NCBI GenBank assembly: GCA_022605425.2
Contig: JAKIMF020000004.1
Span: forward strand, 1,483,982-1,547,981
Length of the DNA stretch: 64,000 nucleotides
Reading direction: 5' to 3'
Source: Hamiltosporidium tvaerminnensis FI-OER-3-3
Taxonomy: Eukaryota > Fungi > Microsporidia
The position numbers were made by a program, and so were the translations under genes. Below the pieces are notes generated by a model that searched no databases, was not told the DNA's origin, and saw nothing but the letters and a program-made list of their open reading frames with translations. The first letter of the stretch is position 1. The number at the start of each line of letters is the position of its first letter. Positions 22,511 through 64,000 of this stretch are shown in pieces.

Positions 22511-24297
22511 ATGCAAAAGTTGATAATATTTTTAGAGATGATAATTTCTACTGTTTTTTGTACATTAGAAAGCACGGTAGAGGATGATATTCAACACGCA
22601 CAAAACCAATCAAGAAGATGTAATTTTGAAGTAAACCGAGAATCACAGGACATGAAAGTCAAAATTGGGGATCAGCATGCAAGTAATTCAGGTCATGGTC
22701 CTAAAAAAGCCCAATATTTTGGAGACCAAGATGGTTGTGATCTTTTCACATCAGAACCAAGCACTTCGCAATTCGAACCTTCACCGAGAAAACAAAAAAG
22801 AAGATTGACTAATGAAAAAAATAGTCTAAGATTGTTAGAAAATCCACAAAGAAATATTACCTTAAAAATGAAACTTGAGAATATAGAGGCTGTTAAAAAC
22901 AATTTTTTAAAGCAACTGTTAGATTCAAAAATATTAAAATTTACAAGCGAAAATATGAATCTACCAGAGAACAGACGTTATAACCCCACAGTAGGATATC
23001 CAATAGCCACAGAAACACAGTATTTTAATAACATTGCAAATATAATTGATAGGTATATTAATAGAATTTTAAATGATCGAAATTTATCTTTTGCAAACCT
23101 TAAGGGTAAATATAATTCTAAGGTAATTTACAAAGAAATTTAAAAGTGCTACAACTGTCGATTCGAAGAATAAATATTGTTAAAAATACGAACAAAGAGG
23201 ATTATAGCAGTTCATTTTTAAAATCTTCTCATTTCGAAGTTATAGAAAACGTTAAAAAAGAATTAGTAAATATTAAAAAGGTAAATAATATTTATTATTT
23301 AGAGGATATTATTGCATATTCAGAAAAAATCCGAATATTCGGAATAAAAAGTAAAAAAACATTTACAAAATTACAGTTACAAGAAATGTTAACAAGTTTA
23401 GAAATCCGAAATGTCAAGGAAGAACTTCAAAAATATAGAAATATTCCATCTTTTTACGAATTTATGCTATTCAAATATAGATATGCAGATAATATAATTG
23501 ATCATATTGAAGAAGGATGTTTTTTAATGGTTCATTTTCTTCTTGAAATATTATTTACTAAACTAGAAAATATATTCAAAAAAATAGAAATATACAAAAA
23601 GCTAACTGAAAATGATTTATCAAATGCATATAAAAATCTTTCCTATAAAAATAAAATAGATTTAGAAATACAACCACTTAAAATAATACTTATGCACATT
23701 TATTTGGGTCTAAAAAATGGTCTTTGTTTGTTTAAAAAATACATCATAGTGTATTTATTAGAATTTACACATTTATTTATGACCGAAAAAATACTTAATC
23801 TGTGTATAAATGACGATTTTGGTCGTAATATTTTTTCGCTTTACCATTATATATATGATGATTCAATGTCTTTACAGGCTGATTTGTTTCTTAGAATAGG
23901 AAATGCACTAGCATTTCTTTCTCTCCACAATTATCACACTTCTCAAGATATAAATCTTAGCTTTAGTAAAATAATGAATCATATTTCACAAAAAAGTTAT
24001 ATAATTACTTTACAGGCAATTTTAAGAGATATTTTCCCCAATTGCATTCATTTTTCTGCTTTTTATCCCGAATTATTTACGAATGTTGGCAATTTTATCG
24101 AAAATATCACTCTCACCGAAAAATGGGAGGATTTAGATTCTCGCATCAAAATTTTGTTTTTTAAGTTTTGCATAAAATATGCATATATGTTAAGGCATCT
24201 TTTATCCAGCGATTACCATTATGAAAAAATGGTTTTAGATTCTTCCATGACGCAACTTTATAATGATATTTCTAGTTCTTTTAATGAGCCCGTATGA
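22511..24297 (+). CDS. Secreted hypothetical protein (~595 aa), paralog of 2926-4908, split by a single 1-nt frameshift at ~23122-23140 (sequencing error or young pseudogene)
   Basis: ORFs 22472-23143 and 23146-24297 abut in different frames. Adding one T in GAAATTTAAAAGTG gives E-I-L-K-V-L-Q and one continuous ORF. Signal peptide MQKLIIFLEMIISTVFC; AATAAA at 24304-24309. Confidence 0.78.
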
Positions 24298-24749
24298 ATA
24301 CAAAATAAACTCTAAGTACATTTTTAATTTTTTAAGATCATCTTATACAGTATTTAATTTAAATTCATATTACAAAATATTTTTTCGACTTTTTCAGGAT
24401 TTAGTATTAATATAAAGGTGTATATAAACCAATTCTTTTTTAAAAATCCAACAAGAGGCACAATTGATTTTTTGCTTGCAATTATTATAATAAAAAATTC
24501 TAAAATATATATGCTTATATTCCGTGTTTCAACCAAAGAAAGTTTATGAGTTTAAAATATCAGTTTCTTTTCTTTTAAATTGTTCATAAAATACAATTTT
24601 GTCAAATAAAGATTTGATATTTCGCAAGCTTTATAGATTATAGCTTGGTTGTTCGTAAATGTTTTTTTTATCATAAATCATTGTGTATGCACGATTTTGA
24701 CATTCAATTTAAACATATATAGTTCAGTAAAAACACATTTATTGAAAAA

Positions 24750-27180
24750 TAAAGCAACTCAATCATAAACCCTACACCTCACTCATATATCATAAGCAAA
24801 AATAGTTTTTTTTAGTACGTTTAAAAAAAAATTTTCAAGCAAATTAATAAGAATAACGTGTTTTGATAAAAGAAAATAAAAGTTATACATCTTTACAAAG
24901 TTTAACCTTAATCACAGACAATATTTTTATTTTTCTTTGTGATATATATCTTTACACCGAGTCTTTTCAAATAGTCTATTAGGTTATTTTTAGGCTCTTT
25001 GCCTTGGTGTTTATTGTATTTAAGTTATGATTTTGATTTGACTTCTCTGCCAATATATTATAAGTGAATGAATTCACTTATTTAGTCAAGTCCGATTTTA
25101 AACAAGAATAGAAGTATTATTACACTATCTTTTAGAGCATAGTTGTAGAATATGTAAATAAACTTACATGTACAATTTTATAAACACTCAGCTTAGGTAG
25201 TTCAAGATATAAATCAATTCCGCTGCAATCATTCTAATAAAAATATTGTAGTGATTGTGACATAAGTTCTATGGCTTCTACAGTAGGTATAATCTTTATA
25301 CAAATAAGGAAGGATTAGTAGTTCTTGATAAGATAGTCTTAGCTTACTTGTAGAAGATGCCACAACATTAAAAATATAACACTATCTATAGTTTTTGAAA
25401 TTTTAAATATTTAAATGTCTTTCCTTTTTATATTTTAAGTAGAAAAATCGTAATTTTGATAGTATAAACTCTAACCTACAAACACAATCATAGAAATTTT
25501 ATTTTTTGAATTACAAATAATTGTTTCATTTAATTATAAGACTAAGTTTTAATCCTTTGACTTTTATATCCACCTTTAAATATATTTAGATATTAAAATG
25601 ATATTAATATCTTGTAATTCCCACGCGTATAGGTATCCCTTCATTATTTAAAGAATTGTTCATAGCTATATATCTAATTAGCACAGTAAATATTAAAAAT
25701 GATTCAAATTAACTTAGCTTTTAGTGAAATATATTTACTTAAGATTCATTCAATCTTTATACCAAATTAAAATATTATCTATATGTTTTTTTATTTGAAT
25801 TGTTTTTCGCGTGAATCTGAATTGCTTCATAAGAAAGTTAAAGATCAAAAAAACCAAAAAACATAAAACTCAAACATTTATAAAATAGTTGTAGAAATTG
25901 TATTTAAACTAGGTAAATAAATTAAAAACAGTAAAATTAACAAACAACAATATACAAACAGTATAATGAAATGCAGTTTTAATGTTGAAGTAGTATAATA
26001 AGAACAAGATTATCAGTTCGAGACATATAAATGTACTATACAATTTATTTGATTTTAATTTTTTAGATAATTAGAGTAAAATATTATATAAGTCTAATAA
26101 CAAATAAAATAATGGAAAACTAAGGAATATCTTTACAAATATAAAAATTTATGTTTTAAATTGGTCGAATATGAGTTAATAGTTTAAAACAAAATTTTTA
26201 TATGAATATATTGCGATGAATCAAATATCAAAATTCTCTAATATAATTGTATGATTTAGTAAAAATAACTTAATTCTGTATAAATCTAAATAAAAGCATT
26301 TTATTTCAACGGAGTCAATAGTATTACATTTTTAATAAATTTTCTTGAAAGTATTATACATGCAATTTAAATAACTTTTCGCAGGTATAATTTTCTTTTA
26401 ATTAGCTCTATATTTTTTTTAACCAAAGAGCAATACATATATAATACAAAGCCGTTTGCTCAAATTTAGGAAAAGTAACTAATATGCGATTATATGAAAT
26501 TCAAAGTTATGTATGTTTACCCTATATGATCAAAGTATCAATCCATATATTAGAGGCTTTTAAAAACAATTTCACAAAATTTAATGCGGCCCTAGTTAGG
26601 TCAAACACAACGTATTATGACCAAAATTAAAAAATATTATTTTTAGATAATGAGTTGAGGTTTAGATAGTCCAAACATATAAAATAACAGTAAAAAACAG
26701 CCAAAACCTTGCACTCAAAAACTTTCAATTATGGTAAATTTTATAAGCTTATTAGACTTAACACTCAAAAATCATATAAGAAGTAATGCTACTAATTAAT
26801 ATGTTCCAAGAAAACCATTTACAATAAAACACAGAATTTTAAGATTAATGAATATAAAATTGTTATAAAATTAACGAAATTTAATTAAAATATGATAAAA
26901 GCATACCTTATTCTAGAAAATTACAGATTAAAAGCTTCAGAATTGTTCTATATTAAGAAAACTGCTTGAATAAGGGACTACTTAACTTAGCAAATGAATA
27001 ATAAATGAATTATCTGAGAAAAATGTAAACAAATTAGAAAAAAGTAAATAAAAATACAACTAACATAAATTAAGTAAAATAAACTTGATATAATTTAAAT
27101 TCTGAACTTAAAAAACATAACAAAAATATTTAAAAAACTAAAATTTTGAACATAAAAAAACTTAACGAACAAAAAAACGA
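24750..27180 (-). pseudogene. LRR-like protein pseudogene, copy A
   Basis: Minus-strand fragments L*NLP*LKVFECKVLAVF, LDYLNLNSLSKNNIF and LEFILSKLRFFYLKY, with many stops and frameshifts. Colinear with 46675-49115. Confidence 0.6.
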
Positions 27181-28199
27181 CAACTACAATTAAGAATGTC
27201 TAATTTTTTATTTTAAAGATCAATATTGGATATCAACATCAAATACTACTTACTAATTTCATATTAGGCATAAATAATGAACTATAAATGTTTTGTATCG
27301 ATATAGAGCCTAAAGTTTTGTAGATTATAATATAAATAACAAAATATAACTAAAAAACCTACACTAGTGATCTAAAAAACCTATTTAGAGGTTATAAAAA
27401 TATATGTATTATATTATAAGCACCATTAAAAATATTCAAACTTTAAAAGTATATAATAAGAATAAATACATTATCTTAACTGTGTAAGAAATATTAAAAT
27501 TCTACTACTAATATGCGATAAAATTATATTTAGAACAATATATATGACTTAAAACAAAATAATAGACAAATAAATCGAAAAAGTAGGAATATATATACCT
27601 AGCAAAGTACTATATTTGTAAAATAAGTATTTAGCCAAAGTACGAAGTATTCTACGTACTATTAATTAATTGAAAATCTTAATTTTATATTTTACAAATA
27701 ATTATTGTGCACTGAACAAAATTAAAATGCAATTTTCATTTTTAAAGATTTGCATAACTTTTCAAGGTCATTTAAAATTGTAGATTTATTTAATAAGTAA
27801 AAAAATTAAATGTGATATAAATATGAAGTTAAAAGAATATCTTGGTATAGGCTGACTATTATTTGAATAAAAGGGAGATATGAAGAGTCGAACAGAAATG
27901 AATTTTGATCACAAATTTAAAGAAAGCTTTTACATTCAAATTCCGAAAAAAGTGTATTGCGAAAAGCTTTGAATGAAATAACGACCTAATAAATCCATTA
28001 ATAAATAAAACAATAAAAACTTCTAAATTAGAATAAATTTTTAAAACTAAACTAATTTAATAATAAATATAACCATCGCTTAATTAATTTTAATAGATAC
28101 AATATAAAATTAAAAAAAAATAAACTAAATTTATAAAAGGGAACAGCTCGATTAAAAAAGAATATATAATAACTGTATCAAATGATAAATGACTTAAAA

Positions 28200-45180: not shown

Positions 45181-46674
45181 TGAATAACCTACATACATCT
45201 CACTTTTTCTATTTTTTTTTCCTAATTATATTTTACTCACCCTTTCAGATTTGATTAAATTTTATATTTTGTATTTTTGTGTAGTTTGTGATTTTGCTTT
45301 AAAATTCATTGCTTGTTAATTTAAGGGTATATTTGATTGCATCCCTGTTCCTGGTTTGTAATTATTTTGCACAGGCGCTTATGTTTCCTCTATATTTTTA
45401 CTTTATAAATTAATTCGCTAATATTCTTTTTGCGGACAAAAAATTAATTCAGTTACAAATCCAGATTTTGCGTTACTCAAAAAAATAACTAGTCTATTAA
45501 ATTACATTGGTTGTGCATGGGTATCTACTGATACTGATCCTTAAGCTTGCGATAGAAGCTTACTTTCTATTTATAAACAAGTTCTAATTAGAAATTAATA
45601 ATTTATTTCGCTCAATGCAGAAACAAAGAGAAATAATAGCAAAAGCCAACATCAATTACTTAATTGAATTTATAGAAAATTATTAATATAAATATTTTTA
45701 AACAATATATTATGAGACGAGTAAATCTATAAAGAGTATCGCATGGAGAGAATAGCTTTAATTAAATTTAGTAATTTTATAAAAGCATAGAATGAAACTA
45801 TACATATAAAGCTAGAAAAACATGCAAAAAACTTTAAATGTAGTTAGAAACTGAAATATTCTTTTACCAATAATACCAAAATGGTCTAATTTACAACAAA
45901 ATCGATTTTATCAGGATGTGTAATTCTTCTATAAAATTTGATGATGAAAATTCACATTTATAGCTACAAGTTAGTAATAAACACAACGAAACTGTTACAT
46001 GCAACAATTAATAGCTTAGAAAAAAACAAATTAAAATTTCAGGTTCTTAGATAAGTCATAGTTTAGGCACTTTTTATTTGCATATTTTTGTTTTGCGTTT
46101 TATCGTGTATAACTTTTCTAAATTTAAAATAATTTATAGAACTACGTAATAAATTAAAAATTGGTAGATATGAGAAATATTTAAAAACTAAAATTTTTTG
46201 GTCAAATTGTCTAATTTAATAGTAAGCAGTAAAGCAAAGAATGTTTTACTATTATTGTATGAAATATATGTTTTAAAGCCGATACTATGTTTGATATGAA
46301 ATTTGCGGTGTATAATTCCAAGGCATATAACACTTTTCCCAAAACACAAGTCGAAATTTTACATTAAATTTTTGGTTTGATAAATAAAAAGAAAACTTCC
46401 AGAGTTTTTTCAAAATAGATAAGTTAATACTAAATTTTTGTTTGCAAAATAGTTTTTATAGGTTAATAAAGTATAAATAAAGTTTTCTTGGGATTTAAAA
46501 ATAAAATATTAATACTTTTGCAATTTTTTTAAAATTTTATAATCATACAAGTATTTCAATTTTTTTTACCTGGATTGTAATAGACATAACAAAAGAAATC
46601 TAGATTCTTTTATAAAGATTATTTTCGAACAATTTATTTCTATGTAAATAGGAAAAGCATATATATTTAAAACG

Positions 46675-49115
46675 AAAACAACTCAATCATAGACTCAATA
46701 TCTCATTCATATATCATAAAGAGTAGATAGGTTCTTTACAAGTTTACAAGAAATAGATAAGATAATGTACAAGAGATAACGTGTTGCGATACAAAGTAAA
46801 TAAAAGTTATTTTTTTAAAAAGTTTAGGTTAGAACCCACAACTCATTATTATATCCTTTTTTATTTATGATATATATCTTAGCCTCGGGTTTTTCAAATA
46901 GGCAACTGCGTCCCATAATTAAGCTCTTTGCCTTAGATTTTGTGTAATTTTATTTAATGTTATTGATATGACTATCTACCAATATATTATAATTGCAATG
47001 AACCCGCTGTTTAGTTAAATCCGACTTTAACCAAGACCGGATGAGTTTTTTGGCACTACTTTTGAATCATAATAGGAATACATATAAATAACCTTACATA
47101 TTCCCGTTCTATAATCCAAATCAGTTTAGATTGTGTAAGAATAATAATTCATTGCAAATGTATTGGTAAAAATAGTAGTTGATTGTGGTACAAGTTTCTT
47201 TTGCTTCTACACTGGGTTTAATGTTTATATATATGAAGACGTGTCAGAAGTTTTATAAGAAGATAGTCCTAAGTCACTTTTAAAAGATGCCACAAATTAG
47301 AAACTTCCTAAATTTTACTTTGTTCTTACTTTTAATATTCAATTATCTTTTTTTTATATTTTAAGTAGACAAATCGTAATTTTGATAGTATAATCTCTAA
47401 ACCAACAAACACAATCATAGAAATTTTATTTGTTGAATTACAATAAACGACCGATTTCATAGAAATAATATGTTTTTTAATCTTCTCATTACATATCATC
47501 CCATAAATATATTCAGATATCAAAATTGTATAAATCTTGTAAGTCACAGTGTAAAGTTATTACTTCGTTTTTGAAGATTTTTTCATCGCTGTAAAGCTCT
47601 TTAAAAAATATATATATTAAAATATGTGGTATAAAATTAAGTTTATACGGAACTATGTATTGATGATTCCTTCTATCTTTATAAAATTAAAATATTGTCT
47701 AAATTATTTTTTAGTTGAATTGTTTTTTTATGCGAATCCGGTTTGTTACAGTGAAAGTTAGGGATCAAAAAAACCAAAAAACAGATATCAAAACCATTTA
47801 AGTAATAGTTGTAGAAATTGTATTTAAATTAGGTAGATAATTCAAAAGCATTCAAATGTACGAATAATTAATGTAAAATCATTCAGACAAATGAAGTTTT
47901 AAAATAAAAGTAATATAAATAAAATAAAGTTATTAGTTCAAGACATTTTAGTATACTATCCTATTTATTTAAAGTTAATTCTTTAGCACTTTGCAGTAAG
48001 ATAGTATTAATTCTAATAAAAAAAGTTTACAAATTATAAAAAAATTTAATACATTTATGAATATAACAATTTAAGTTGGTTCACTCTGGCTATATATTAT
48101 AAAACAAAATATTTATTTATGATATATTGAGATGAATGAAATATTAAGATATACTGCCTATAAATTGTATTACACATAATAAATTAATTTCTTTATAAAT
48201 CTACAAAAATTTAATCCATTTCACAAAAGAAATAGTATTAATTTTCTCATTAATTCGATTAAAAGTTTTATACATGATATTAAAATATCTTTCACATATA
48301 CATCTCTCTTTCAAATAGATTTATATTTTTTTTAAGTAACATAAACAATACATTTATAATAGATACCTGGCATTTCAATCAATTTTATAAAAGGTAAATA
48401 ATATGAGGTTATATAGAAATCGAAAGTTATCTATAAATCCCATATATGATTAATGTTTCTAACAATATACTGAGAGCTTTTCCAAACGATTTCATAAAAT
48501 TTAAAATGGCCATATTAAAGTTAAACACAGCGTATTATGACCAAGTAAAAAAATCTTATTTTTAGATATTGATTTAAGGTTTTAAAAGTCCAAATATTCT
48601 AAATAACGAGTAAAAAACATCCAATACCGTACACTTAAAAACTTCCAATTATGGTAAATTTTATAATCTTATTAGACTTAAACCCTTAATATCATATAAG
48701 AAGAGATAACACCTAAGTATATATTCAAATGTAACATATTGATGTGATTAAACGAATTTTTAGATAAATGAATATAAATTGACATAAAATTAACAAAAAT
48801 TCCATAAAAATATAATAACATAATACTTTTTTAAGGAAAAAATAGTACTTTATTTAAAAACTTCACCATTATAAGAGCTAGAACAGTTTTATTTGTAGAA
48901 AAACTGCTTACATAAGTGACCATTTAACTTAGAAAAAAATAACAAAAGAATGATCAAAAAAATGTAACCACATTTAAAAAGTAGATTAAGGTTAAGCAAA
49001 ATGAATTTAAGTAAAACAAGTATATACAACAAGAAATTTTAAATGTAGTAAAAGCAGAAAAATAATTACATAAACATAAAGTATTCCAGTTAAAAAAACT
49101 TAAAAATGAAACGAG
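46675..49115 (-). pseudogene. LRR-like protein pseudogene, copy B (direct duplicate of 24750-27180)
   Basis: Long near-identical blocks with copy A, e.g. caattatggtaaattttataa and taatagttgtagaaattgtatttaaa, at an offset of ~21.9 kb. Fragments L*NLP*LEVFKCTVLDVF and YLEYLDF*NLKSISKNKIFLLGHNTLCL. Confidence 0.65.
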
Positions 49116-49199
49116 TCTAAATAAAATTTAAAAAATAAACAAGTATAAAAATTTAAAGCAAAAATGGCTGATTTAATTAAAGAAACCATATTTGATAAT

Positions 49200-52100
49200 T
49201 ATAAAGATTTCTGGTCCTTTTTCCGGATTTTTCATGTATATAATTTTATTTGTTTTTAGGTTTTTTTTTTAAATTTTAGAATCTTCAAAACGACTATAAG
49301 TACCTATATCGACTAAATTCGATAATTTTGGAGTACAGAAATTTACAAAAAGCACCTAGAAATTTTATTATGCATACAATATCTAATTATTAAACAATTA
49401 TTCATTATATTCAAAGTAATTTTCGGTATTAAAACATATATCTTGTAAAATATTTTCAAAAATTTTGGAATAGCCTACACACTATATACGAAATAGGTTG
49501 ATCGAAATGAAAAAAAAAATATTTATTAAATAATGTTCTTAAAAACGGGAAAATTTTATTAACAACCCCAATATTGTTTCTTTATTAGATAATTTCTTGT
49601 ATTTTTGCTGTTTTTTGACTATTTAAAAATTTTATTTTGTCATCGATATTTTTCGATAATTCTCGATTTGTTTCATATACTGTATAAAAATATATCACTA
49701 AAAAAATCAAAAAAAATTGTAATGAAGATTGCATATACAATACCAAATTTTATACATAATAAACAGTCATATTTTTAATAGCATATTGGTAAAATTTGTA
49801 TCAATTTCTGAGCATGAAATAGTATTTCTTTTTTACACGTATTTTAAAAATTTTAAAATCTTCAATACTAATACATGTAACTCTACTAAACAAACTAAAA
49901 AAAAACAAGCAATAAAAAAAGTTAAGAAAAAAGACTAAATTTATTCTTAACTATAAATAAAATTTTTATCTAAACATCTGATTATCTATACCAATTTTTA
50001 TTCAACGAAACATCTATTTTTTTAATTATATTTTTTTCCATTTTTCATATCATTCTAACGACTATACATAAAACAAATCGAAAAAATCAATTCATTCGAA
50101 TTTAATAGAAAGATATACTATAAATTTAAATTAAAGAAAAATATTCTGTTACACTATACATAATTTGATAGTTGCGATATTTTCGTAATATAATTCTTAA
50201 ATTTTTTTAACGAAGATTTTCACCTTTTTTTAAATTACTTCATACAAAATATAATATGTAGTTTGACAAATTCGAAAAAATTAATTTAGAAATTTACTTT
50301 CAGAACATCAGAGCTTATTCAGAAGCAACCTTTTAGAGTACTGTAAGACTCCTCTATAAATTAATTAAAATTTGTGCATTGAATATGTATTTTTTCGTTG
50401 ATGTTTTTTCAATTTTCAAACGCGACATATTTATAGGTATATATGCCTAAAAAATTCAAAAAAATTGAAAATTGAAACAAACACACAAAATGACTTAATA
50501 TTATCATAAAGCATAATCTAAGTATATAGACGTATTTTTTAAAATATTTAGAGCGTTATAATTATTTTATGGTTTATTTGGGCAACTTGAATTTTTCATA
50601 ATTGTTAAATTTCTTCATACACATATAAAAGATATACTAAGCAAGATTGCAAAAATAAGTAATAAAAATTTATAAGAAAAACTGCTATATTTTATAGTAA
50701 ACATAAAAATAAAATTATTAAAATCACACTTGATGTATTTTTATAGATTCCTATGCATTGAAGTGTTTATTTTTTAAGAACAGCTTTTTATATTTTTAAA
50801 ATCGTATATACGACTGTACAAAGACTGATTAAGTAAATCAAAAAAATTGATAAAAATTGACCAAATTTTTTATTATCTCATTCGGAACTTTATAAATCTA
50901 TATGGAATGTTTTTACATTCTTTGGAAATAAATCATATATTTTTTTGGTTTATTTTTAGAATCTTGCGATGGTTATACAAGTATATTTAAACTAATCTAA
51001 CAACATTAAAAAATATAGGTAAATAAAATACAAATTTAAGAATAAATATATTAGGTTAAGAATCTACCTGGTAGTATTTCGAATATTTCTTATTTAAATA
51101 AACATAATTTTTTTTATATTTTGAATTTGTGATAACTTTCGAATAATTGAATATAGTATATATAAATATAATAAATGACTTTGAAAAATTCAGTAAAAAA
51201 AAATTGCTTAGAATCTCAGAAAATTTAACATAAACATAACATTAATGATATCCTAAGAACATTTATTATATGTGTTCTTTGAGATATTAACTAATGTTTT
51301 TTTTTCTGAATTTTCTTTTCTAATTTAAAATCGTTTCCTACAGTATATAGAAAATATTATCGAAAAAAAATATGAAAATTTGGAAAATGGAATTACTCAG
51401 AAACATTCTTAAACCTTCAAAAAATATAATTATATTAGATTATTAAAAGAAGTTCTGTATAATTTTCAGAGAATTTTAATCATTCAAGATTTTCTTTTTT
51501 TTCCTGATATTTTCATCATCTCGAATCGTCAATACGACTATATACAAATTATATTGAAAAAAATTACTAAAAATTAGTTAAAAAAACTTACATTAAAAAC
51601 AAATAATTTCATATTAAACGATCTTTTTAAGTTATTTTGAGAACTATTAAGCCATTTTAGGTGATTATTAACCATTTAATATTATATATTTCATTTATTT
51701 TTTTATTAATTTTCCGAGTGTTTAATACTGCTATAGAAAAATATTTGAACCACTTATAAAAAAAATTAGGTAATAAAAATCCGCATAATCATGAATAAAT
51801 TCCATTTTAAACAATCTTATTTCATTATTAATAACAGATTCGAAGTATTTTAATAAATTCTTAAGTAATTAATCGAATGTATTTTTTAAAATTTTTTTAT
51901 TGCTTCATAACTGTATACTGCAAATATATCGAATAAAATCGTAAAAAATTAGGTAATAAAACCTTGATAAAACATAGCTAGATTTAATTATAAAAAAGGC
52001 ATGAAATATTGTTAAAAACCCATCTGATGTATTTACAACAATTTTAAAGTATTAGATCTTATATCTTTCGAGTCCAAGTTCTTTAAGATTTCTAAAGCGT

Positions 52101-53560
52101 TTCATATGCTATATATAAAATATAGTAAACAAAATTCAAAAAATTAGGTAGGAAAAAATGACATCGAAGATAATCAAAATTTTATTTAAAACTACAAAAT
52201 TAAATTATTTACCTAATATCCGAAGTGCTTTATGCAATTTTTATTCAATAAAACATATATTTTTCTAAATTTATTTTTTTCAAAATTTTTGTATTGTCAA
52301 TTCGACTCAAGGCGGACACTAGCTTTGAATAAAATCGAAAAAAAATGTACATAAATAACACCGAACATTAAGAAATTTATTTAAGTAAATTAATTTTCAC
52401 ATTTAGATAATTTAAAGCGTTTAGATATGGGATTTTCAATTATTAAATTGTATATTTTTGAACCAATTTGTTTCCGATTTCCAGTCGTTTCATACACTAT
52501 GAACAAAAGATTTCAAAAAAATACAGTGAAAAAATTAAATGACAAAATTTATAAAAATGACCAAATTAAATAGTAAACATCATTATTTAATTATTATAAG
52601 ACCATTCACTCAATTTACAATAATTTCTAAATATGTAATCTTATATTTTTATAGCTCGATTTTTTAATAATTTTATAACTTCTATTCGACTATACATAGA
52701 TGATCGACCAAATCTAAAAAAGTTAAATAGAAAAAAATTTCTTAAAATATAAAGATATACTATATAAAAAAATATTATATTTATTTTCACATATCTATTC
52801 TATTATAATGTATTTACAACCTTAAGATCTAACTATGTTTGAATTATTTTTTACATTTTTCCAAATTGTTTCATACACTATATACATAATATATAAAACA
52901 AAATTTAAAAAAATAGGTTAAAAAAAATCCAAAACATATTAAACTTTTAATATAGACTATAAAAAGAAATTATATTCTCCGTCCAAGAGATTTTTATTGA
53001 TTTTTATCTACTAAAACTTATATATTTTAAAATCGTTATAAAATAATTTTAGAATGTCTATACCTATATACCAAACTATATAAAAAAACCGAAAACATAA
53101 AATAAAAAAAATATGCCGGAAACATGGCTAAATGGAATATTAAACATCACCAATTATATTATTATAAACATTTATGTACTATTCTCGTGATTTTTTAAAT
53201 ATTAAATTCTATTTCTTATAAGCTTAACTTTTTCTTAGTTTTAAAGCCTTCAATACAAATATACATAAACAAATCGAAAAAAATAGGTAACAAAAATTAG
53301 CACAAAACGGCGATAAATTTTAATATTTACAAAATCGAACAAACTAATACAAGATCTTTTATATCCATTCTATATATTTCAAATAATAATTCATATATTT
53401 TTTCGAATTCGATTTTCAAAATTTTAAATTTCTAAATACACTATATAAAAATATTATTGTATGAAAGAAAAAAAAATTAGCTAAAAAATTTACATAAAAT
53501 ATAAATGATTTTAATTCCTAACTTTGGAATAAGATAATATAAAGAACATTTAGAATGCTT
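49200..53560 (+). repeat. Diverged ~190-bp satellite array 1 (~23 monomers)
   Basis: Core TCGTTTCATACACTATA or TCGTCAATACGACTATA, followed by GAAAATATATTGAACAAAATCGAAAAAATTAGGTAATAAAA, recurs near 49288, 49478, 49674, 49864, 50057, 50241, 50426, 50616, 50808, 50975, 51151, 51338, 51531, 51724, 51906, 52103, 52299, 52491, 52684, 52872, 53059, 53252 and 53436. Mean period ~189 bp. Confidence 0.85.
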
Positions 53561-53949
53561 TTATGCACTTCTAATATTACTTGATTATTTTATTGACTCT
53601 TCTTAATAAACTTTAAAATATTTCTTAAAGAATAAGGAAAAAGAATAAATGATTAGAAAATATACTGCAAAAATATCTAAATTATAACGATTCTAGTTAA
53701 TTAGAAATAATATGAAACAATAAAATATATGAATAGAAAACTATCTATCCAAGGATAAAAGTCTCTTTGTACTGAATTAAAGAGCTATTTAAAATGTAAC
53801 AAAATAAAACAACGCAAATAGAAAAAAACACATAGGAAAAGTCAATATTTAAAACAAAGAATAATAATGTATGAAATGTAGACGAAATTAAAAATAATTA
53901 TATAAAATAAAGCAACGTGAAATGACTTAATTTATTTATTTCAAATATA

Positions 53950-55450
53950 ATCCATGCCAATTAATGTAAATTTTATTGTTTTCTTCATATTACTATCTGT
54001 TTCCTTAAATCGGTATTTCAAATTCTATTTCCCTGCTTATTTAAAATCGAAGTATACTTTCATGTTTGTTGTATTTAAATTAAGGAGGTTAAATATTATT
54101 ACCATTGATTAGTTTAAATTTTCCGGATCATTAAGTATATATGTAATGTGGATATCATTTATTTTGTATTATCTCTTTTAAAAACATCTATAGGTCATTT
54201 AGATTAAAAAAAGTATAAATAATAAAAGTAAAAGAAATAAGCCCCAATGGTTAAACTCAATATTCTTTACAAGACAACAGTTTAGTGTTGCATTTACCTC
54301 GCAGACCCTTAAAATAAAAAATGCTCAAAACGTCTATATATAAATAACGAAGCTCCAATTTACTCGTGAATTTAATACCTATATTCAATATTGATTTCAT
54401 AAAAACCAGGAGTGAATTAACACTTAATATCAATGTATTATACAAAAATCTATATAACCAGAACATAGAATGTAGCACACATTTTCTAAAGTAAAAAAAT
54501 GATAGAAAGCCAATTTTATATATTATTTCTAACACGATAATAAATTACTATGTTGATCTAAAATGAAATATGCTAAAAACATATCAAGAAAATTTATAAT
54601 ATGGTTCTCAGTCATATTTTTAATAATATTTTTCATTTCGACCTGATCAAATAATAGCAGGTTAAAATGTAAAACAAATTCGATCTATTGCGTATAATAA
54701 TTTTCGAATGCTAAATTTAATTTTTTCTAACTATTATACTTGAGATCTTATAAAAATGACGGCGTAAAAGGTTTAGACTGTAAATAAAATTATATAAATT
54801 AATTTAAATATTTTACTTTAGTAGAGACAATAAAATCAAAAATATTTCGAATAATATAATAAGATTAAATTAAAAGCAACCAAAATATGTAACTATAGTA
54901 GATGTTCTCCTTAAATTGATTTAAGAATATTAAACTATTTTGAAAAAGATTTTAAACATATTTTAGTCTTCTGATACAGTATCAGAACAATGATGTTTAT
55001 TTTAAATACAGGAATCCTATTTTGCCATTTAAAAAGAAATATTTTATTTTTTTTCGTATTGTAAGTTTTCGAATTCCACTTTAAATGGAAATCTAAGCAT
55101 AAAACCAAAAATATTTTAGCTTCTGACTTACTATTTCAAGGACCCAATGCGATTCACCTTTTTCTCAATATAACAGTATTTAAAACGAATATTAACACAG
55201 TATTTAATATATAGGCTTAATTCAGCATTGTTTTTAATTCTAAAAAATATTTATTTTATTATAGTTTACAAATAGTATTTTCAGACACAATAAAATCCGA
55301 GTTATTTTGCAATAATTTCCATAAATTTAAATTTCCTGTAAAAATAATTTTATCTCGATTAACATAGTTTTATATTTTTCTGAGATAACTATTAGTCAGC
55401 AAAATTAGGATTTAATTATTTTTAAATTTTTATCAGGGGATTTGGCCATA
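53950..55450 (-). pseudogene. LRR-like gene remnant
   Basis: Includes ORF 54257-54535 (KLELRYLYIDVLSIFYFKGL) and other leucine-rich fragments. Confidence 0.3.
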
Positions 55451-56599
55451 AAAAAAATTACTTTTTTTTAGTAGAATTTAGAGTTATACGCATCTAAAAC
55501 ATAAATTATAGTTTAAATGAATAAATTTACGTTTAAAGCTTATTAGAACAAACATTTACATATAAATATCAAAAAATTGCATCAAGGTTCTGAAAAAAAA
55601 TATTCGTTGTAACATCAGTAAAAATATCCCAAAAAAGAAATTGCTAAACAAAAATAGTAAATTAACTTATTAATCTAGATTGTATGTAAGAATCAAGATT
55701 TTATAGTAGTAAAGAATATAAATTTGAAATAACTTTATTATACTTGAAAACAGGTTTAAAAATCTCATTATATTAAGAATTCATTTAAAAAAGCTTTTTT
55801 ATAGAATATAAGAACTGAATGCACATTTTCTTTAGTAAAAACAAATTCTAAATTAAAAATTTGATATATCAAGATAATAACGTTTCCTTAATGATAATTA
55901 ATTTACTGTAAATAAATTTACGCAACTAATTAAATATTAAGAAACAATCTATTCTTTACTAAAAAAATTAAGTTGAACAAATTTTTCAACAATATATATT
56001 TAGAATATTTTTTTGTGCAAAATAAAAAGATTTATTGCCTCATAATTCTAAGTTTTGAATAAACGGATAAATTATATCTTTAAATTCAAGAATTATTATA
56101 AAGATTTCAGTGATACAATAAATCATTCAGTTATCCAATAATCTATTATTATATGAATTAATTTACAAAAATTAAAAAATCTTACATTTATTTCTTATAT
56201 AGCTCGGATATCGTTCTGAGATACATAAATTTATAATAAAAAGCAGTTCTTACACTTATAAATTGTGGGAAATTCTAGTTTATAAAATTTAACTAAAATG
56301 ATTTGAAATAAAAATTTTGTGGATCAAACTAGATTAGATACAAGAAATATTGTTAATTTAATTATTTTTTTCAGTTACTATTGATTTTTATGGTAGGTTT
56401 ACTAATTTTCATAACTTCTAAAAGCATAGCTTTTTAGTCTACAATTAAAAAAAATAGTTTCAGTTTATTTTTTATATTATTGAATTTTGCTAGTATAACC
56501 AAATTATGAAAAACATATAGTTCATTTCAAATAAATTAAAAATAATGCTTTAAACTATGTTATACAAATTTTAGTATCGTAAAATATTTATTTGATAGT

Positions 56600-58200
56600 T
56601 AACAAATATAAGTTTATCCATTTAAAGAAAAAGGGAAGATATATATTAGATAAATTATTGGGAAGAGAATTAACGAATAATAAAGCTTTAAAAAATTAAA
56701 TCAGTTTCTTAACTAAAGAATTTACTATTCAATATTAAAAAAGCTCGTAAATATAGAGGTATTTATCACGAATCTTATAGAAAAATTTTAAATTATTAAA
56801 TCAACCGAAGAAAAAGATAAATTCTAATAAACTTCTTTTATTTCATAAAATTTTATATTTATATTAGTTTTTTATTTATGATTTGAATTCAAGAATAAAT
56901 ATCACAATTAATTCTATTTTTAAACCAAACAAGGTAATATATAACGATCTATATGAAGAAGAATGTATTATTATAACTTTTTACAGGAATTTCAACCTAG
57001 TAATGGATATATAAATATAAATAGAATGTAAAACATCTAAAAGTATAAAAAAGTATTTTGAAATATATAAAACTACCTTTCTTTCTTGTGAAATGTCAAA
57101 AAAAATATTTAGAAATTATATTTAAGAATAAAAATTGCTCATAAAATATTCAAATAATTCAAATAATTTTAGGATAATTAAGCAGCATTTTCATACTAAA
57201 AGAAAAAAATTATTGAGTGAAAATACTTAAAAGTTTTTTTAAAATATATTAATTTATTAATCAATTTGGTTTTATTTATGCCTCAACCTTGATATTTCTT
57301 ATATATTTTTAAATTCGTTATTTTTTTTTAAATTATTCAACTGACATTTTATTTTTTTAGATTAACAATGAGTTGCTTTTTAATGAATTTAAATATTTGA
57401 TTGTTAATGAAAGCCTTATCACTAATATATACTAAAGAAAATTGAAGAAATAATTTTTTGTATGTCATTCAGCCTTTAACAAATTTCATTTTAAAAATTA
57501 TTATTGATCGTTAGATTGGACTTAATCTCTTTATTTGATTTAGAGATCTGATTTATATAATTTTTTAATATACACTATCCTGAATAATCTCTCAATTTGT
57601 TAAAATGCTTAATATTTAGACAAATCTTACTTATATGAACTTAAACAATTATTACAACTTATTAAATAAAGAATAACGTCATATTACAATAAAAAAGCTT
57701 TTAATTTATTTTTTTCTGTTTTACAAAAAAAAAATCAAATTTAAGAACTTGAAATATAAAATATTCACTTTTCTTTTTATATATTGTTGACTGAGATTAA
57801 CAACTCTTTAAATGATTGTTTATAATAAATTCTTAGCTTTAAAAACCGAATAAAATTAAAATTACATATAAGTGATTTAAAATAAAATGAAAATGTAATA
57901 GAAAAAATAAAATAAAGAATTAGATATAATTAACGTAATTGAATTTATTTAAATAATTATAATGTGCAAAACAGCAGTACTGAGAATTCCACTTCTCTTA
58001 CAAACTATTTATTATTTTTAGAAAAATAGTTTTCCTAAAATCAATAAATATTAGCAAATCTATAAATAATATGCTAGAATTTATTATTTTAAAATGAAGA
58101 TATATGTAATTACTATTCAATAAAGCATATATATGAACAATGCTACCATATATATTTTAAATATCAAAAATGAATTGTATTTAAAATTAATTGTAACAAA
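56600..58200 (+). pseudogene. Decayed gene, unknown product
   Basis: Fragments such as NSRINITINSIFKPNKVIYNDLYEEECIIITFYRNF and RIYYSILKKLVNIEVFITNLIEKF. Confidence 0.25.
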
Positions 58201-58299
58201 GTATTTCAAATGAAGACTTAATGTTTTTAAGCAATCATACTTTCTAATCTATTTATATAAAAAAAGTATCTGCTTATCATTGATTTTAGAGATAATAAG

Positions 58300-59890
58300 A
58301 CAAGAAGGGATTTAAAGGAAATAAATTTAGGAAAACAATTAAAGGGTGTAAGTTATAAGGGTAGTATTGATTGGGTGTGTAAACAACAAGGTGTTAGTGA
58401 TAAAGCAAGAAATTATAAGGGTTTTAATTTAATATGGGTGTATAAAATGGTGTTAATCACAATTGTAATAAAGAAAGGGTGATAATCACAATTGTAACTA
58501 ATAAAGGGTGTTATTTTATAGACATATGTATAAAAGGGTGTTAATCACAATTGTGATAAAGAAAGGGTGATAATCACAATTGTATTTAATAAAGGGTGTT
58601 TTTTTCAAGACATATGTATAAAAGGGTGTTAATCACGAAGTAACTAAAAAAGTTTATTATTGAAAAACATAACAAACAGGGTTTTAATACTATTTATATT
58701 AGATAAAGGGTAGTATTTCTATGACAGATGTATAAAAGGGTGTTAATATACATGGTAGTAGATAAAGGGTGTTAGACATATGGTAGTGGATAAAGGGTGT
58801 TAATATATGCTGTATCAATAACGGGGTGTTAATGTTATAAAAGTGTTATTACGGTGTTAGTGATTAAGATAGTAATTATAAGGGTGTTATTTATATTAAG
58901 GTTATACTTTAAAGAGTCTTAGTAGTATAGCTATTTATATACATAAATAAAGGGTTAGGGTTATTATAAAGATAGATATAAGGTTAGCGTGTTAATAATA
59001 AAGCATTTTATATAGATAAACAAAGGGTTGTTATTATAAAGATAGATATATAATTAGGGTGTTAATATAAAGCTATTTATATACATAAATAAAGGGGTGT
59101 TAATTTATATAATATTCCTATTAAAATATAACAGGGTGTTAGTAAATGTGCTTCAGAAAATAGATAACGGGGTGTTAATTTATTACATATCTTCAGATAT
59201 ATAAGAGGGTGTTAATAATTATAAAATTTATAGGAAAGGATAATAGGGATTTAAGAAAATAAAAAACGAAATGAAAAATAAAAGGGTGTTAGTAAAAAAT
59301 AAATAAATTAGGAGTTATTTATAGTGATGCTCAAAATAGAGAATAGTAGGGTGTTAATAATACATATTTAAAACAGTATGTAAAAGGGTGTTAATAATAA
59401 AGGCATTAATACAATAAATAACAGGGTGTTAATATTAATATTTAAAGCAGTATATAAAAGGGTGTTACAAATCTAGGCATTTATAAAATAAATAACAGGG
59501 TGTTAATAAGGAGACTTATAATTTGCGCTAGAAGGGTGTTTTACTGGATCTTAGAATTTATAGGAATAAATAACAAAATGTTAGTAAACAAGAAATATTT
59601 CAATATAAATAACAGGCTGTTTGTAAATAAAGTGATTGGTTGATGAGATAGCAGGGTTTTATTGAAAATAGAATTTCAAAGGATATATATAGAAAGGCCT
59701 TACCATATAAATAGGGTTAAATCTATACAAAAGGGTCTAAGTATAATAGATATTTATACGAATAAATAACAGGGTGTTATTGATAAGAATAAATATCTAA
59801 AATTTAAAAGGGTGTTAGTAATAAGACAATAATAAACAAAATAAGGGTGTTAATTATACGGATATATTTTACTAAATAAAGGGTGTTCAT
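58300..59890 (+). repeat. Array of AAGGGTGTTA motifs with variable AT-rich spacers
   Basis: About 25 GGGTGTT copies plus degenerate ones, all on the + strand. Spacing is ~29-30 bp in the first part and ~36-38 bp in the second. Confidence 0.92.
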
Positions 59891-59929
59891 TATATGGATA
59901 CTTAAAAAGATTGGATTGTTACTGATATA

Positions 59930-62900
59930 TATAATGAAGCTATACCAAACAAAATCTAGGAAAAATTTAAAAAGAAATATAAGTAATTTTTATTTCTGAA
60001 ACATTATTAACTATTGTTAAATTACTCTTAGTATTCAAGAAGTTTTTTTATATAAAATCTTATATATTTTAAAAGAATTTTTTCATTACTTTCTTATCGT
60101 TTCATACAGTATATACAAAATATATTAAACAAATTTAAAAAAAATAGGTATTAAATTACAATAAAAATAATTAAATTCAAAGGCAAATCAAATAAAAAAA
60201 ATATAAACTAGATATTTTTATTATATCATTCCTTAATATCAAACTTAATGTATTTTTTCAGATTAAATTTTTTTCATTTTTTTTGGATCTTTCATTGCAG
60301 TATAGTAATCCAGATTGAACAAATCTAAAAAAATAAAGAAACAGAATTTTATGATAAAAATAGCTTAATTAAATATTAAACAATCTTATAGATTCATTAT
60401 AAACCAATTCAAATATTTATAATATTTTTAATAAGTTAATCTTATTTCTTATGAATTTCATTTTTTTTGAATCTCTTATACTGATATAATAGAAAATATA
60501 TCTAACAAAATCGAAAAAATTAGGTAATAAGATTGCCGAAAACATCACCTAGTTGTAAAAAAAAGAAACGCATTGGTTTTATTATGAAACATTCTGTTAG
60601 TATCTTAAGAATTTTTTAAGTAAAATTCGAATATTTTTTTAGATCATCTTGCTAAAGTTTTTTGATTGCTTAATACAATATATAGAAAATATATTGAAGA
60701 AAATAGAATAAAGTGGTAATGATACTTTTCCAAAATATAAACAGATACAATTATAAACAGAATATGTTATATTATCATAAACTAATCTGAAGCACTACAG
60801 AAATTTTGAAACATTAGATTATATATCTTTTGAGTTGAATTTTTTAATCATTTTCAAAGTGTTTCATGTATTATATGCAAAATATATTGAACAAAGTAAA
60901 AATAAAATAAAATTAATACAAAATATGAACAGATTTTATTGTCAAGCATAAAATAAAATTAGTTGCCTCAAATCCAATATGCTTTTAGCATTTCTTATTT
61001 AATAAAACATATATTTTTCTAAATCTATTTTCTCAAAATTTTATAAACGTCTATACGACTATATAGACCAAATCAAATAAAAGTAAAAAAAAATAGATTT
61101 AGAAAAACCACAAGCGAATCAAGAAAGATTGTTGTAAACATTTTAATAGATTCTATTATGAAGATTTGATATATTTTCATTGCTTTTAATCTTTTAAAAA
61201 CATATATATATTTAATCCATTTTCGTACAATTTTCAATTCGTTCAAACTACTATGGTAAACTGTATTGAATAAAATTTAAAAAAATAGATTTAGAAAAAT
61301 TTACTTTTACTAGCCTAAATTTTATATTAGATAATCCATTTAAATTTATAAACTCATTTGTACTATAAAATAAATTTTAAACATTTAATCATATTTCTTT
61401 TTGACTTTTTTTTTACAGATTTCAGGATCTTTCATACCACTATAGTAAACTATATTGAATAAATTTGAAAAAAAATATGTATGAAAAATTTATAAGAAAC
61501 AATAAACGAATTTTATATTGAACAATGTTAATGTTTTATTTTAAAGTCATATTTAGTATTTGTAAGTAGTTTAAAATTAAAAACTATTTTTTTAAATTTA
61601 TTTTCTTACGTATTTTGGAATTATTTTATAAAGTATACAAGAAAAGATTTCGAGCAAGATAGGAAAATAAAAGTAATAAAGTTCACATTAAACATCATAA
61701 AATTATAGTATTTATGAACTATTTAATATATTTTAATGTTTTTCAAGCAAAGAAACAAATTTTTTGTAAAAATTAAATTTCCGTTTATTTTTAAATTGTC
61801 TATACTATATACGGAAACTATTTTAAAAAAAAGAAAAAAAATTGGTAGTATAAATTCACACAAAAAATAAGCCAATTTTATTATAAATCAAAACATAAAA
61901 TTATATAATAAATATCTGAAACTTTTCCTGCTTTTTTTAGTATTTTAATCAAATATTTTTTCAGTATAATTTTTTTGTAGTACTTTAAAATCTTACATCG
62001 ATTATATGGAAACTAGATCAACTAAAATCTAAAAAAGTAGGTATTTAAAAATAAACTAAAACATAGACAAATTTAAATAAAATAAACCTCTTGACTCATT
62101 AAAATATAATTGCTAGTGCTAAAAGTATCTTTAAGGATTAAAACCAACATTTCTTTTGATTTCTTTTAATTTTTTTTTGTTCTAATTTTCGATCGTTTCA
62201 TATACTATATAGAAAATATATCGAGCTCAATCGAAAAAAATAAAGTTCCAATATTCGAAAGAAAACCGGATAAAATTTTATTTCAAATACATTTATATAG
62301 TTATTATAAGATAAATTGTTATATCTTTAGTGGGTTTAAAGTATTAGAACATAATATTTTCTTGTCTTAGTTTTCATAGATTTGGAATTGTCAATACTAC
62401 TATAGTAAAATGAATTGCACGAATTTAAAAACATAGGTATTTAAAGATTACAAAAAACATAATCAAATTTTATACAAATAGAACTATCGACTCAACAAAA
62501 TATCATTCGTAATATTAAAATTATTTTTAAAGTACTGAGCCAATATTTTTTTTAACCACAGTTTTACAAATTTTTAGATCGTTTCATATATTATATAGAA
62601 AATATACCGAACAAAATCAGACTAAATTAGGTAACAAAAATTAATAGAAAAAAGGATCAAATTTTATTACAAAATATAAAATAATATTAAAAACCAAGCA
62701 TTTGATATATTTTAAGAAAATTTCCTTCGAATTAAACAAATATTTTTTAAAATCGTTTTTTTCAACATTTTTAAATCGTTAATTTACTATAGAAAAATAT
62801 AATGAAAATATTGAAAAATTTAGGTAATAAAAAATATTGAAAAAAATTCCAAATATAAAACTAAAGGAGACAAAAAATATTATTGCACACCTATAAGTAG

Positions 62901-63720
62901 TGTTTGCAGAAATTTTTTAAAAAAATAAAATATATTTCGGTTGCAATATTTTTCATATTTTTTGATCGTCAATACCACTATAGTAAAATGAATTAAATAA
63001 ATTTGAAAAAAAATAATAAAAAAATTTAATAGAAAACATGACTTAATTTAAAAATATATAGACTCATTATGTTTTTATCCGAGAATTTGTTGCAATTTAG
63101 TAACTTTATATATCTAATCTTTTATTTATAAAACTTGATTGCTTCAATTTTTTAAGTTGCTTCATGCATTATAGACAGAAAAACTTGAAACTAATGAAAA
63201 AAGATTATTAATAAATCTTAGTAAGAATAAATATTATAGTTTAGGCCTAAGTAACTTAATAGGTTATTATAAATTCGGCTTTGTAGTTGCAGACATTTTA
63301 AGACATTAGATCTTATTTATTTTAGAATTTATTTTTTTTACAATTTTTGAAATGTTAATACGAAGACTAGTCAGAGAATATACTTAAAAAAATCAAAAAA
63401 AATACACACAAAAATTTACAATAAATACTGCAAGTTTTAATTTTAAAACTCTAATTAGTATGTATGTTTTTTAACTCAATATTTAGTAATTTTAGAAGCG
63501 TTCCCATACATCTAAGCAATATTGTCAAACAGACATAAAAAATAAAAAATAAATATCACATTAAAATAGAATAATTTTTGTTGTAAACAAAGATTTTTTA
63601 ACTATATAAAATACTTATGAATATACAGTATTCTTAGCATAAAAATATGTTCTTTTAACTCGTTTTTTTTTTTTCAATTAAGGTCATAAAAGATTATAAA
63701 ACTTAGTAAATCTTCATAGA
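59930..63720 (+). repeat. Diverged ~190-bp satellite array 2 (~20 monomers), same family and orientation as array 1
   Basis: Cores near 60103, 60293, 60477, 60672, 60865, 61052, 61244, 61433, 61627, 61801, 61996, 62199, 62393, 62585, 62781, 62971, 63163, 63357, 63505 and 63685. Period ~191 bp. Confidence 0.88.
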
Positions 63721-64000
63721 CATAATATTTTTCCTATAAAGAGACATTCTCGCTACCTTTCTGCTTATATTAAAATGTAATATTCTTAAAAAAACTTATT
63801 TTATTTTTTAAATGGTAATTTTCAAAGATATAATCAATCAAAAAATAAGAATATAGAAAGACATACATACTTCACACTAGAAACAACTTACTTTCTAGTG
63901 TAAATTCTCTGAACTTAATTAAATATTTATAAGATAACCTACCTTATTTGTAGATTTTCTAGTAAAGTATGAAATTTTATACAAATCTTATTTAAGTCTT

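Follow-up and report, generated by a model that had tools for sequence, protein, structure and literature searches.

Decayed 190-bp tandem arrays in Hamiltosporidium tvaerminnensis: probable passengers of a subtelomeric segmental duplication

What is a pair of long, gene-free repeat arrays with nucleosome-sized monomers doing in the genome of a microsporidian? The question is raised by a stretch of 64,000 nucleotides from Hamiltosporidium tvaerminnensis FI-OER-3-3 (assembly GCA_022605425.2, contig JAKIMF020000004.1), hereafter called the window, which carries two arrays of ~190-bp monomers together with a G-rich minisatellite. An earlier note on this DNA, made from the letters alone, proposed a composite satellite domain and listed centromere, heterochromatin and subtelomere as possible roles. 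Our analysis leads with high confidence to the following answer: the locus forms the inner portion of a gene-free segmental duplication of the subtelomeres, a large one of at least 55 kb, and two old arrays are carried passively within it. The array-bearing locus is an ordinary feature of the subtelomere and very probably not a centromere. The arrays themselves are ancient and frozen; the block that holds them is young and mobile between chromosome ends.

The position of the locus is informative. Contigs are numbered C1 to C17 in this study, with L and R for their left and right ends, and the window lies on C13 (scaffold_4 in PMC10542269 Table S1). It corresponds to C13:1483982-1547981 and, as C13 comprises 1,547,981 bases, forms the terminal 64 kb of the contig; the two-array locus falls within the final 15 kb. 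The telomere of H. tvaerminnensis is (TTAGGG)n (PMC10542269). This repeat is absent from the end sequence of C13R (window 63555-64000 was read), so that the locus stands at a contig break. The same study lists C13 and C14 as ‘no chromosome end attached’, assigns one telomere each to C12 and C15-C17 and gives C1-C11 as complete. Furthermore, its authors reported that large multicopy repeats adjoin the telomere-less contig ends, and that repeats make up 40% of the genome.

The arrays are readily defined with a profile. In the window, an iterated nhmmer profile recovers 41 clear monomers (E 1e-5 to 1e-22), all of them on the + strand, 22 within 49108-53574 and 19 within 59930-63518. A relaxed profile search adds two weak, in-register monomers at 50058-50427, which brings the count to 24 + 19 = 43. 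The same profile gave 0 matches in the remaining 49 kb of the window and likewise 0 in two controls, the window reversed and a shuffled copy of it. Spacing from start to start ranges from 174 to 203 bp (nhmmer), and monomer length averages 190.0 bp with a standard deviation (SD) of 6.2 bp over the same range. The monomers are 81% A+T with long A and T runs, and in every one of them the first half is A-rich and the second half T-rich. Pairwise identity reaches 73% at most and averages 54%, compared with 42% for the alignment of unrelated sequences of like composition. It is this divergence that makes Tandem Repeats Finder blind to the arrays: the program called no 190-bp array and reported only GGGTGTTA repeats at 58.4-59.5 kb. 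Seed-based repeat finding returned spacings that are multiples of ~190 bp. The earlier note, which had described ~43 co-oriented monomers in two arrays, of nearly constant length in spite of heavy divergence, is borne out in these respects.

No higher-order repeat is apparent within the arrays, as no lag shows raised identity and only isolated resemblances between two monomers occur. One such dimer resemblance lies in array 2. Between the arrays, one adjacent monomer pair is alike (67-73%, at an offset of 8.76 kb); a colinear duplication of array 1 into array 2 was rejected because only these two adjacent monomers match. The surroundings are equally poor in genes. The longest open reading frame (ORF) between window positions 46 and 64 kb encodes 92 amino acids, which agrees with the absence of an intact gene from these 15 kb in the earlier note, and with no ORF of at least 120 amino acids the block is a gene desert. 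An array of structured RNA genes (5S, transfer RNA (tRNA) or small nuclear RNA) was considered and set aside, as Rfam gave 0 matches for window 40000-64000 at E up to 1 and the window has 0 tRNA genes. Our literature search found no paper describing this 190-bp repeat family.

Where else does the family occur? Three queries, namely 941 bp taken from array 2, a 3.2-kb piece of array 1 and the terminal 1.25 kb of the window, were compared with the whole genome by BLAST, with matches detected down to 66% identity. They hit ~22 places, every one at most ~170 kb from a contig end and most of them within 60 kb; no chromosome-internal copy was found by this whole-genome search. The usual distance of the arrays from the chromosome end is 20-70 kb. 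In addition, polarity is uniform: matches lie on the − strand at low coordinates and on the + strand at high coordinates, so that all ~22 places face the nearest end. The chance of such uniformity over ~22 places is ~2^-22. Nine full copies (91-97% identity) are present at both ends of C13 and C14, at C15R, C2R and C7R, and at C16L and C4L. Six of these ends are telomere-less contig ends; the others belong to the complete C2, C4 and C7, where the copies stand 2-73 kb from the telomere. Copies of array 1 with 94-97% identity stand at eight further chromosome or contig ends, and array 2 has 93-97% identical copies at eight other ends. Partial or older copies (~70-94%) are found at the left ends of C1, C2, C3, C4 (a second place), C5, C7 and C15, at the right ends of C2 (a second place, at 1790 kb), C3, C5 and C6, and on C16 at 92 kb and 166 kb.

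The resulting distribution is uneven among contigs. The number of array places per contig varies from 0 to 3, and the three on C16 all belong to one end. Seven contigs (C13, C14, C2, C3, C5, C7 and C15) have arrays at both ends. No array copy was detected by whole-genome BLAST on C8-C12 or C17, and the array family or parts of the block are present at only about half of the contig ends. The earlier note had expected about one array cluster per chromosome if the locus were centromere-like, and the BLAST counts depart from this expectation and fit the scattered arrays that the note had named among its refuting conditions. Among the roles that it listed, the subtelomere is supported by the location of all copies near ends and by their shared polarity; the centromere, which it had put first, is not.

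The arrays are not shared in isolation but as part of a longer block. Window 46647-64000 is 92% identical, in inverted orientation, to the other end of C13 over 17.35 kb. With C14L, C14R, C15R and C16L its identity is 91-95%, and the homology runs 20-36 kb past the end of the window. Toward the chromosome interior, the shared homology begins at window 46647 for some copies and by 40659 for C16L and C14R. Six copy-bearing ends were read as sequence. Homology among them extends over at least 55 kb at 91-95% identity, and in 6/6 the clear monomers number 22 + 19 and the GGGTGTTA array stands just ahead of array 2. Further inward, window 27001-33654 matches the final 6.6 kb of C12, at its telomere-less right end, with 94% identity; the multi-copy subtelomeric domain consequently reaches at least 37 kb into the window. 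Taken together, the C12 end and the six ends with full copies place 7 of the 8 telomere-less contig ends inside the repeat domain. The older copies at other ends (~70% identity) align colinearly with particular monomers of array 1, which implies that the monomers had diverged before those duplications took place.

Identity among the copies is a mosaic. The closest copy to C13R was scored in 1-kb windows, against a background of ~94-95% identity among block copies. It is C16L at 52.1-53.6 kb of the window (99.7%), C13L / C14L at 54.1-55.6 kb (97.8%), C15R at 60.3-61.8 kb (98.2%) and C4L at 62.7-64.0 kb (99%). Over 17 kb the closest copy changes four times, and identity rises locally to as much as 99.7%. 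Such a pattern indicates, on the level of sequence comparison, gene conversion or ectopic recombination among the ends. The tail of the window (62749-64000) shares 99% identity with C4:40677-41933 but only 92-95% with the other copies, and this match suggests a very recent conversion. It also suggests that C13R continues as C4 does, with ~40 kb to the telomere.

Two complete contigs appear to have lost part of the block. On C2, homology stops at C2:1838546, which corresponds to window 63458 and lies inside the last monomer of array 2. This stop is 1063 bp before the contig end and, by coordinates, the telomere lies within ~67 bp of it; 166 TTAGGG units are listed for that end (PMC10542269 Table S1). 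On C7, array 1 (at the equivalent of window 51661) starts at base 481, behind ~79 CCCTAA units, again by coordinates. Both configurations fit a breakage inside the block followed by the addition of a new telomere.

How might this arrangement have arisen? In the history that we favor, the monomers would have drifted to ~54% identity and become too unlike to misalign, whereupon the arrays would have stopped expanding, contracting and homogenising. The whole block would then have been copied and patched between chromosome ends, with the arrays riding along. Ectopic recombination, gene conversion or break-induced replication could each mediate this copying; since break-induced replication copies toward the telomere, it would preserve polarity. 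A chromosome end that broke within the block could be capped by telomerase, and truncated arrays would come to lie directly under the telomere. The GGGTGTTA array represents a separate minisatellite and a chance resident of the block. The role of the arrays would probably be at most that of generic heterochromatin or a silent buffer, with no sequence-specific function.

Some points weigh against passive carriage in a subtelomeric duplication. The telomere junctions of C2 and C7 were inferred from coordinates and published repeat counts and not base by base. The telomere-boundary pattern (H + 4 x TTAGGG) located only 9 boundaries, and PMC10542269 Table S1 was used instead. Furthermore, very decayed internal copies may exist beyond the BLAST reach of 66-70% identity. 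Lastly, a simulation based on the indel spectrum of the arrays themselves predicts looser monomer lengths than those found, which leaves some room for a length-dependent role.

This last point deserves attention, as the earlier note had concluded that monomer length is under constraint. We calibrated a neutral star-tree simulation on the substitutions and indels between block copies. The arrays’ own spectrum comprises 0.16-0.17 indel events per substitution, among them a tail of longer ones (10-37 bp), and forecasts a length SD of 10-14 bp at the observed divergence. The spectrum of the neighboring spacer and flank comprises 0.12 events per substitution with short indels, and forecasts 3-6.5 bp. 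Because the neutral forecasts (3-14 bp) span the observed 6.2 bp, a constraint on length is neither needed nor shown, and we do not retain this claim. A nucleosome-phasing heterochromatin or boundary element, the length of which is kept by selection, would position nucleosomes or nucleate silent chromatin. The subtelomeric location is compatible with such an element, the division of each monomer into an A-rich and a T-rich half speaks for it, and the observed SD is about half of the own-spectrum forecast. However, the neutral forecast from the neighboring DNA covers the observed SD without selection, the indels per substitution among recent copies are not lower in the arrays than in spacer and flank, and the family occupies only about half of the contig ends. 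Moreover, 10-11 bp helical phasing of A/T tracts does not exceed that of control regions, and a dyad in the monomer sequence is not significant against column shuffles (P ~0.18). We therefore regard selection for nucleosome phasing as unlikely. A wider proposal sees the polar, length-conserved arrays as chromatin platforms, either phased-nucleosome silencers or boundaries, or an epigenetically chosen (sub)telocentric kinetochore site with one array per chromosome; we rate it as distinctly improbable. If true, its kinetochore-site version would provide the first sequence landmark for microsporidian centromeres.

The possibility of a conventional centromere requires a separate comment. Microsporidia have so far yielded no centromere signal, and their centromeres have been proposed to be (sub)telomeric (PMC10158259, PMC12449221), PMC10158259 speculating on such centromeres for Encephalitozoon chromosome ends. 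Rich in A+T, devoid of genes and built of head-to-tail monomers close to a nucleosome in length, the arrays could in principle serve as (sub)telocentric sites of CenH3 nucleosome assembly. This role is very hard to reconcile with arrays that occupy both ends of seven contigs and three places at a single end of C16, while BLAST detected none on C8-C12 and C17; in addition, monomers that are 54% alike and lack a higher-order repeat differ from active satellite centromeres, and arrays appear to have been lost through terminal truncation on C2 and C7. Could the arrays instead be internal tandem repeats of a very large mobile element, with the block spreading by transposition? The block is multi-copy, it is edged by a dispersed 2-3 kb repeat and the genome is rich in repeats, as mentioned above. 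Yet transposition leaves unexplained why all ~22 places lie near ends and face them, the proximal boundaries are variable and the truncations nested, without fixed termini, and the block contains neither a transposase or reverse-transcriptase ORF nor visible terminal repeats, so that we give this origin very little credence. A decayed gene whose protein contained repeats of 63-64 residues would have left monomer lengths in multiples of three, and 189 and 192 bp do fall in the length range. However, the lengths show no preference for multiples of three between 174 and 203 bp, no open frame runs through the monomers, and neither the short ORFs nor the 81% A+T with its long A/T runs resembles a coding past; the probability of this origin is close to nil. 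A passively carried component of a subtelomeric segmental duplication thus remains the best explanation of the arrays.

The minisatellite has a different history. The motif GGGTGTTA occurs 22 times on the + strand and 0 times on the − strand, entirely within 58506-59852, compared with 0.5 occurrences predicted by chance. The last motif is ~75 bp ahead of the start of array 2, and a G-strand motif array beside array 2 is indeed what the earlier note had reported. The core is arranged in ~29-bp and ~38-bp units with variable AT-rich spacers, one true GGGTTAGGGTTA is present at ~58953, and the G-rich strand runs toward the chromosome end, like the G-strand of a telomere. However, this array is a member of a genome-wide dispersed minisatellite family and is not telomere-specific. 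Similar arrays give at least 30 chromosome-internal matches on both strands. The core AAGGGTGTTA has 1659 occurrences genome-wide, compared with 67 for the reversed control, and its clusters, with a spacing of ~30 bp, are found all along C1 and on both strands along whole chromosomes. Since the family is genome-wide, the ‘composite’ domain of the earlier note is weakened to a juxtaposition of unrelated repeats. The GGGTGTTA array is still unstable, unlike the 190-bp arrays with their fixed count: its copies in the block differ in the number of exact motifs (22-36) and in large indels with a mean of 25 bp. On C1, some AAGGGTGTTA clusters are in opposed orientation a few kb apart.

Table 1. Features of the array-bearing block in the window (positions are those of the window)
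Feature	Position	Strand	Description
Multi-copy subtelomeric block portion	46647..64000	+	common to all further full copies; interrupted at 64000 by the contig break
Dispersed 2-3 kb repeat copy	46636..48842	.	inner edge of the shared block; 65-71% identity to window 24726-27720
Array 1	49099..53628	+	24 head-to-tail ~190-bp monomers, 22 clear and 2 decayed; nhmmer
AT-rich non-repetitive spacer	53629..58329	.	no gene; no monomer matches; kept in every copy read
GGGTGTTA-core minisatellite	58330..59890	+	periods ~29 and ~38 bp; Tandem Repeats Finder, exact motifs and sequence
Array 2	59927..63554	+	19 head-to-tail ~190-bp monomers of the same family as array 1; nhmmer
Block tail distal to array 2	63555..64000	+	cut by the contig end; extends onward in other copies

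The remaining parts of the window and its copies contribute further observations (see also Table 1). The sole ORF of the spacer encodes 92 amino acids and has no Pfam match. The spacer was also searched for terminal inverted repeats; none was convincing, and the insertion of a mobile element between the arrays was rejected on this ground. The dispersed 2-3 kb repeat, with its two copies in the window, is also 65-71% identical to several places within the initial 40 kb of C13. A match with 91% identity links window 27001-28103 to C7:856254-857349. ORFs of at least 120 amino acids are limited in the window to 2926-4908 (+, 660 amino acids), 22511-23143 (+, 210 amino acids) and 23386-24297 (+, 303 amino acids). 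None of these three has a Pfam match, and the last two may be one broken gene. At the left end of C16, 20.3-32.2 kb into the contig and distal to array 2, the block holds an insertion of ~12 kb which is found in the C16 copy only. On C15, perfect runs of at least four TTAGGG units lie on the + strand at C15:1158412-1158592, ~280 kb from the telomere-less right end; they mark an interstitial telomere tract or else a mis-join of the merged assembly.

These results have several implications. A tempting false lead is removed, since a nucleosome-length satellite in a phylum with unknown centromeres would be part of the furniture of chromosome ends. The break points of the published assembly find an explanation in the repeat domain in which 7 of the 8 telomere-less ends stop. 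In addition, the block allows the structure of subtelomeres and the exchange between their ends to be mapped concretely in a large-genome microsporidian; previously, only ends of the Encephalitozoon type had been described. Finally, arrays that are frozen at the level of the monomer and concerted at the level of the block would illustrate cleanly how unequal exchange comes to a halt once repeats have diverged.

How does the locus compare with known systems? The block lies between the telomere and the unique core, keeps the same polarity throughout and is shared among non-homologous ends with exchange, as subtelomeric blocks do elsewhere. The X/Y' elements of yeast and the subtelomeric duplicons of humans are likewise large blocks on non-homologous ends, oriented toward the telomere, with patchwork identity from exchange between ends. 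They also show terminal truncation with telomere healing, for which C2 and C7 are the candidates here. However, the yeast Y' element contains a helicase gene whereas the H. tvaerminnensis block is a gene desert, and it differs from both the yeast and the human blocks in its long decayed 190-bp arrays and in its presence at only about half of the contig ends. Nucleosome-length head-to-tail satellites also occur beside the telomeres of many plant chromosome arms, as in Nicotiana (HRS60, ~180 bp) and tomato (TGR1, 162 bp). They share the head-to-tail monomers of about one nucleosome repeat with the present arrays. In contrast, homogenisation and a variable copy number characterise the plant satellites, whereas the monomers described here are 54% alike and fixed in number among copies. 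Human alpha satellite (171 bp) and Arabidopsis CEN180 resemble the arrays in being AT-rich, gene-free, head-to-tail and of similar monomer length. A classification as centromeric satellite nevertheless appears very unlikely, as the arrays are not confined to one locus per chromosome, show neither higher-order repeats nor homogenisation, and are terminal at both ends.

Closer relatives provide the last comparison. The telomere-associated repeat elements (TAREs) of Plasmodium falciparum are ordered, polar and species-specific tandem repeats between telomere and core. The TAREs of Encephalitozoon equally combine tandem repetition between telomere and core with species specificity and with fixed order and polarity (PMC10158259), and in these features the H. 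tvaerminnensis arrays agree with them. Encephalitozoon TAREs have units of 33-70 bp, stand directly beside every telomere and flank ribosomal RNA (rRNA) genes (PMC10158259). In H. tvaerminnensis, the units measure 190 bp, usually lie 20-70 kb from the telomere and occur at a subset of ends, with no rRNA nearby; the rRNA operons of this species are not subtelomeric (PMC12449221). In view of the unit length, the distance and the contigs on which no copy was detected (C8-C12 and C17), the arrays were not assigned to the Encephalitozoon type of TARE. The array block of H. tvaerminnensis is a further case of a known phenomenon, namely subtelomeric repeats carried in a segmental duplication.

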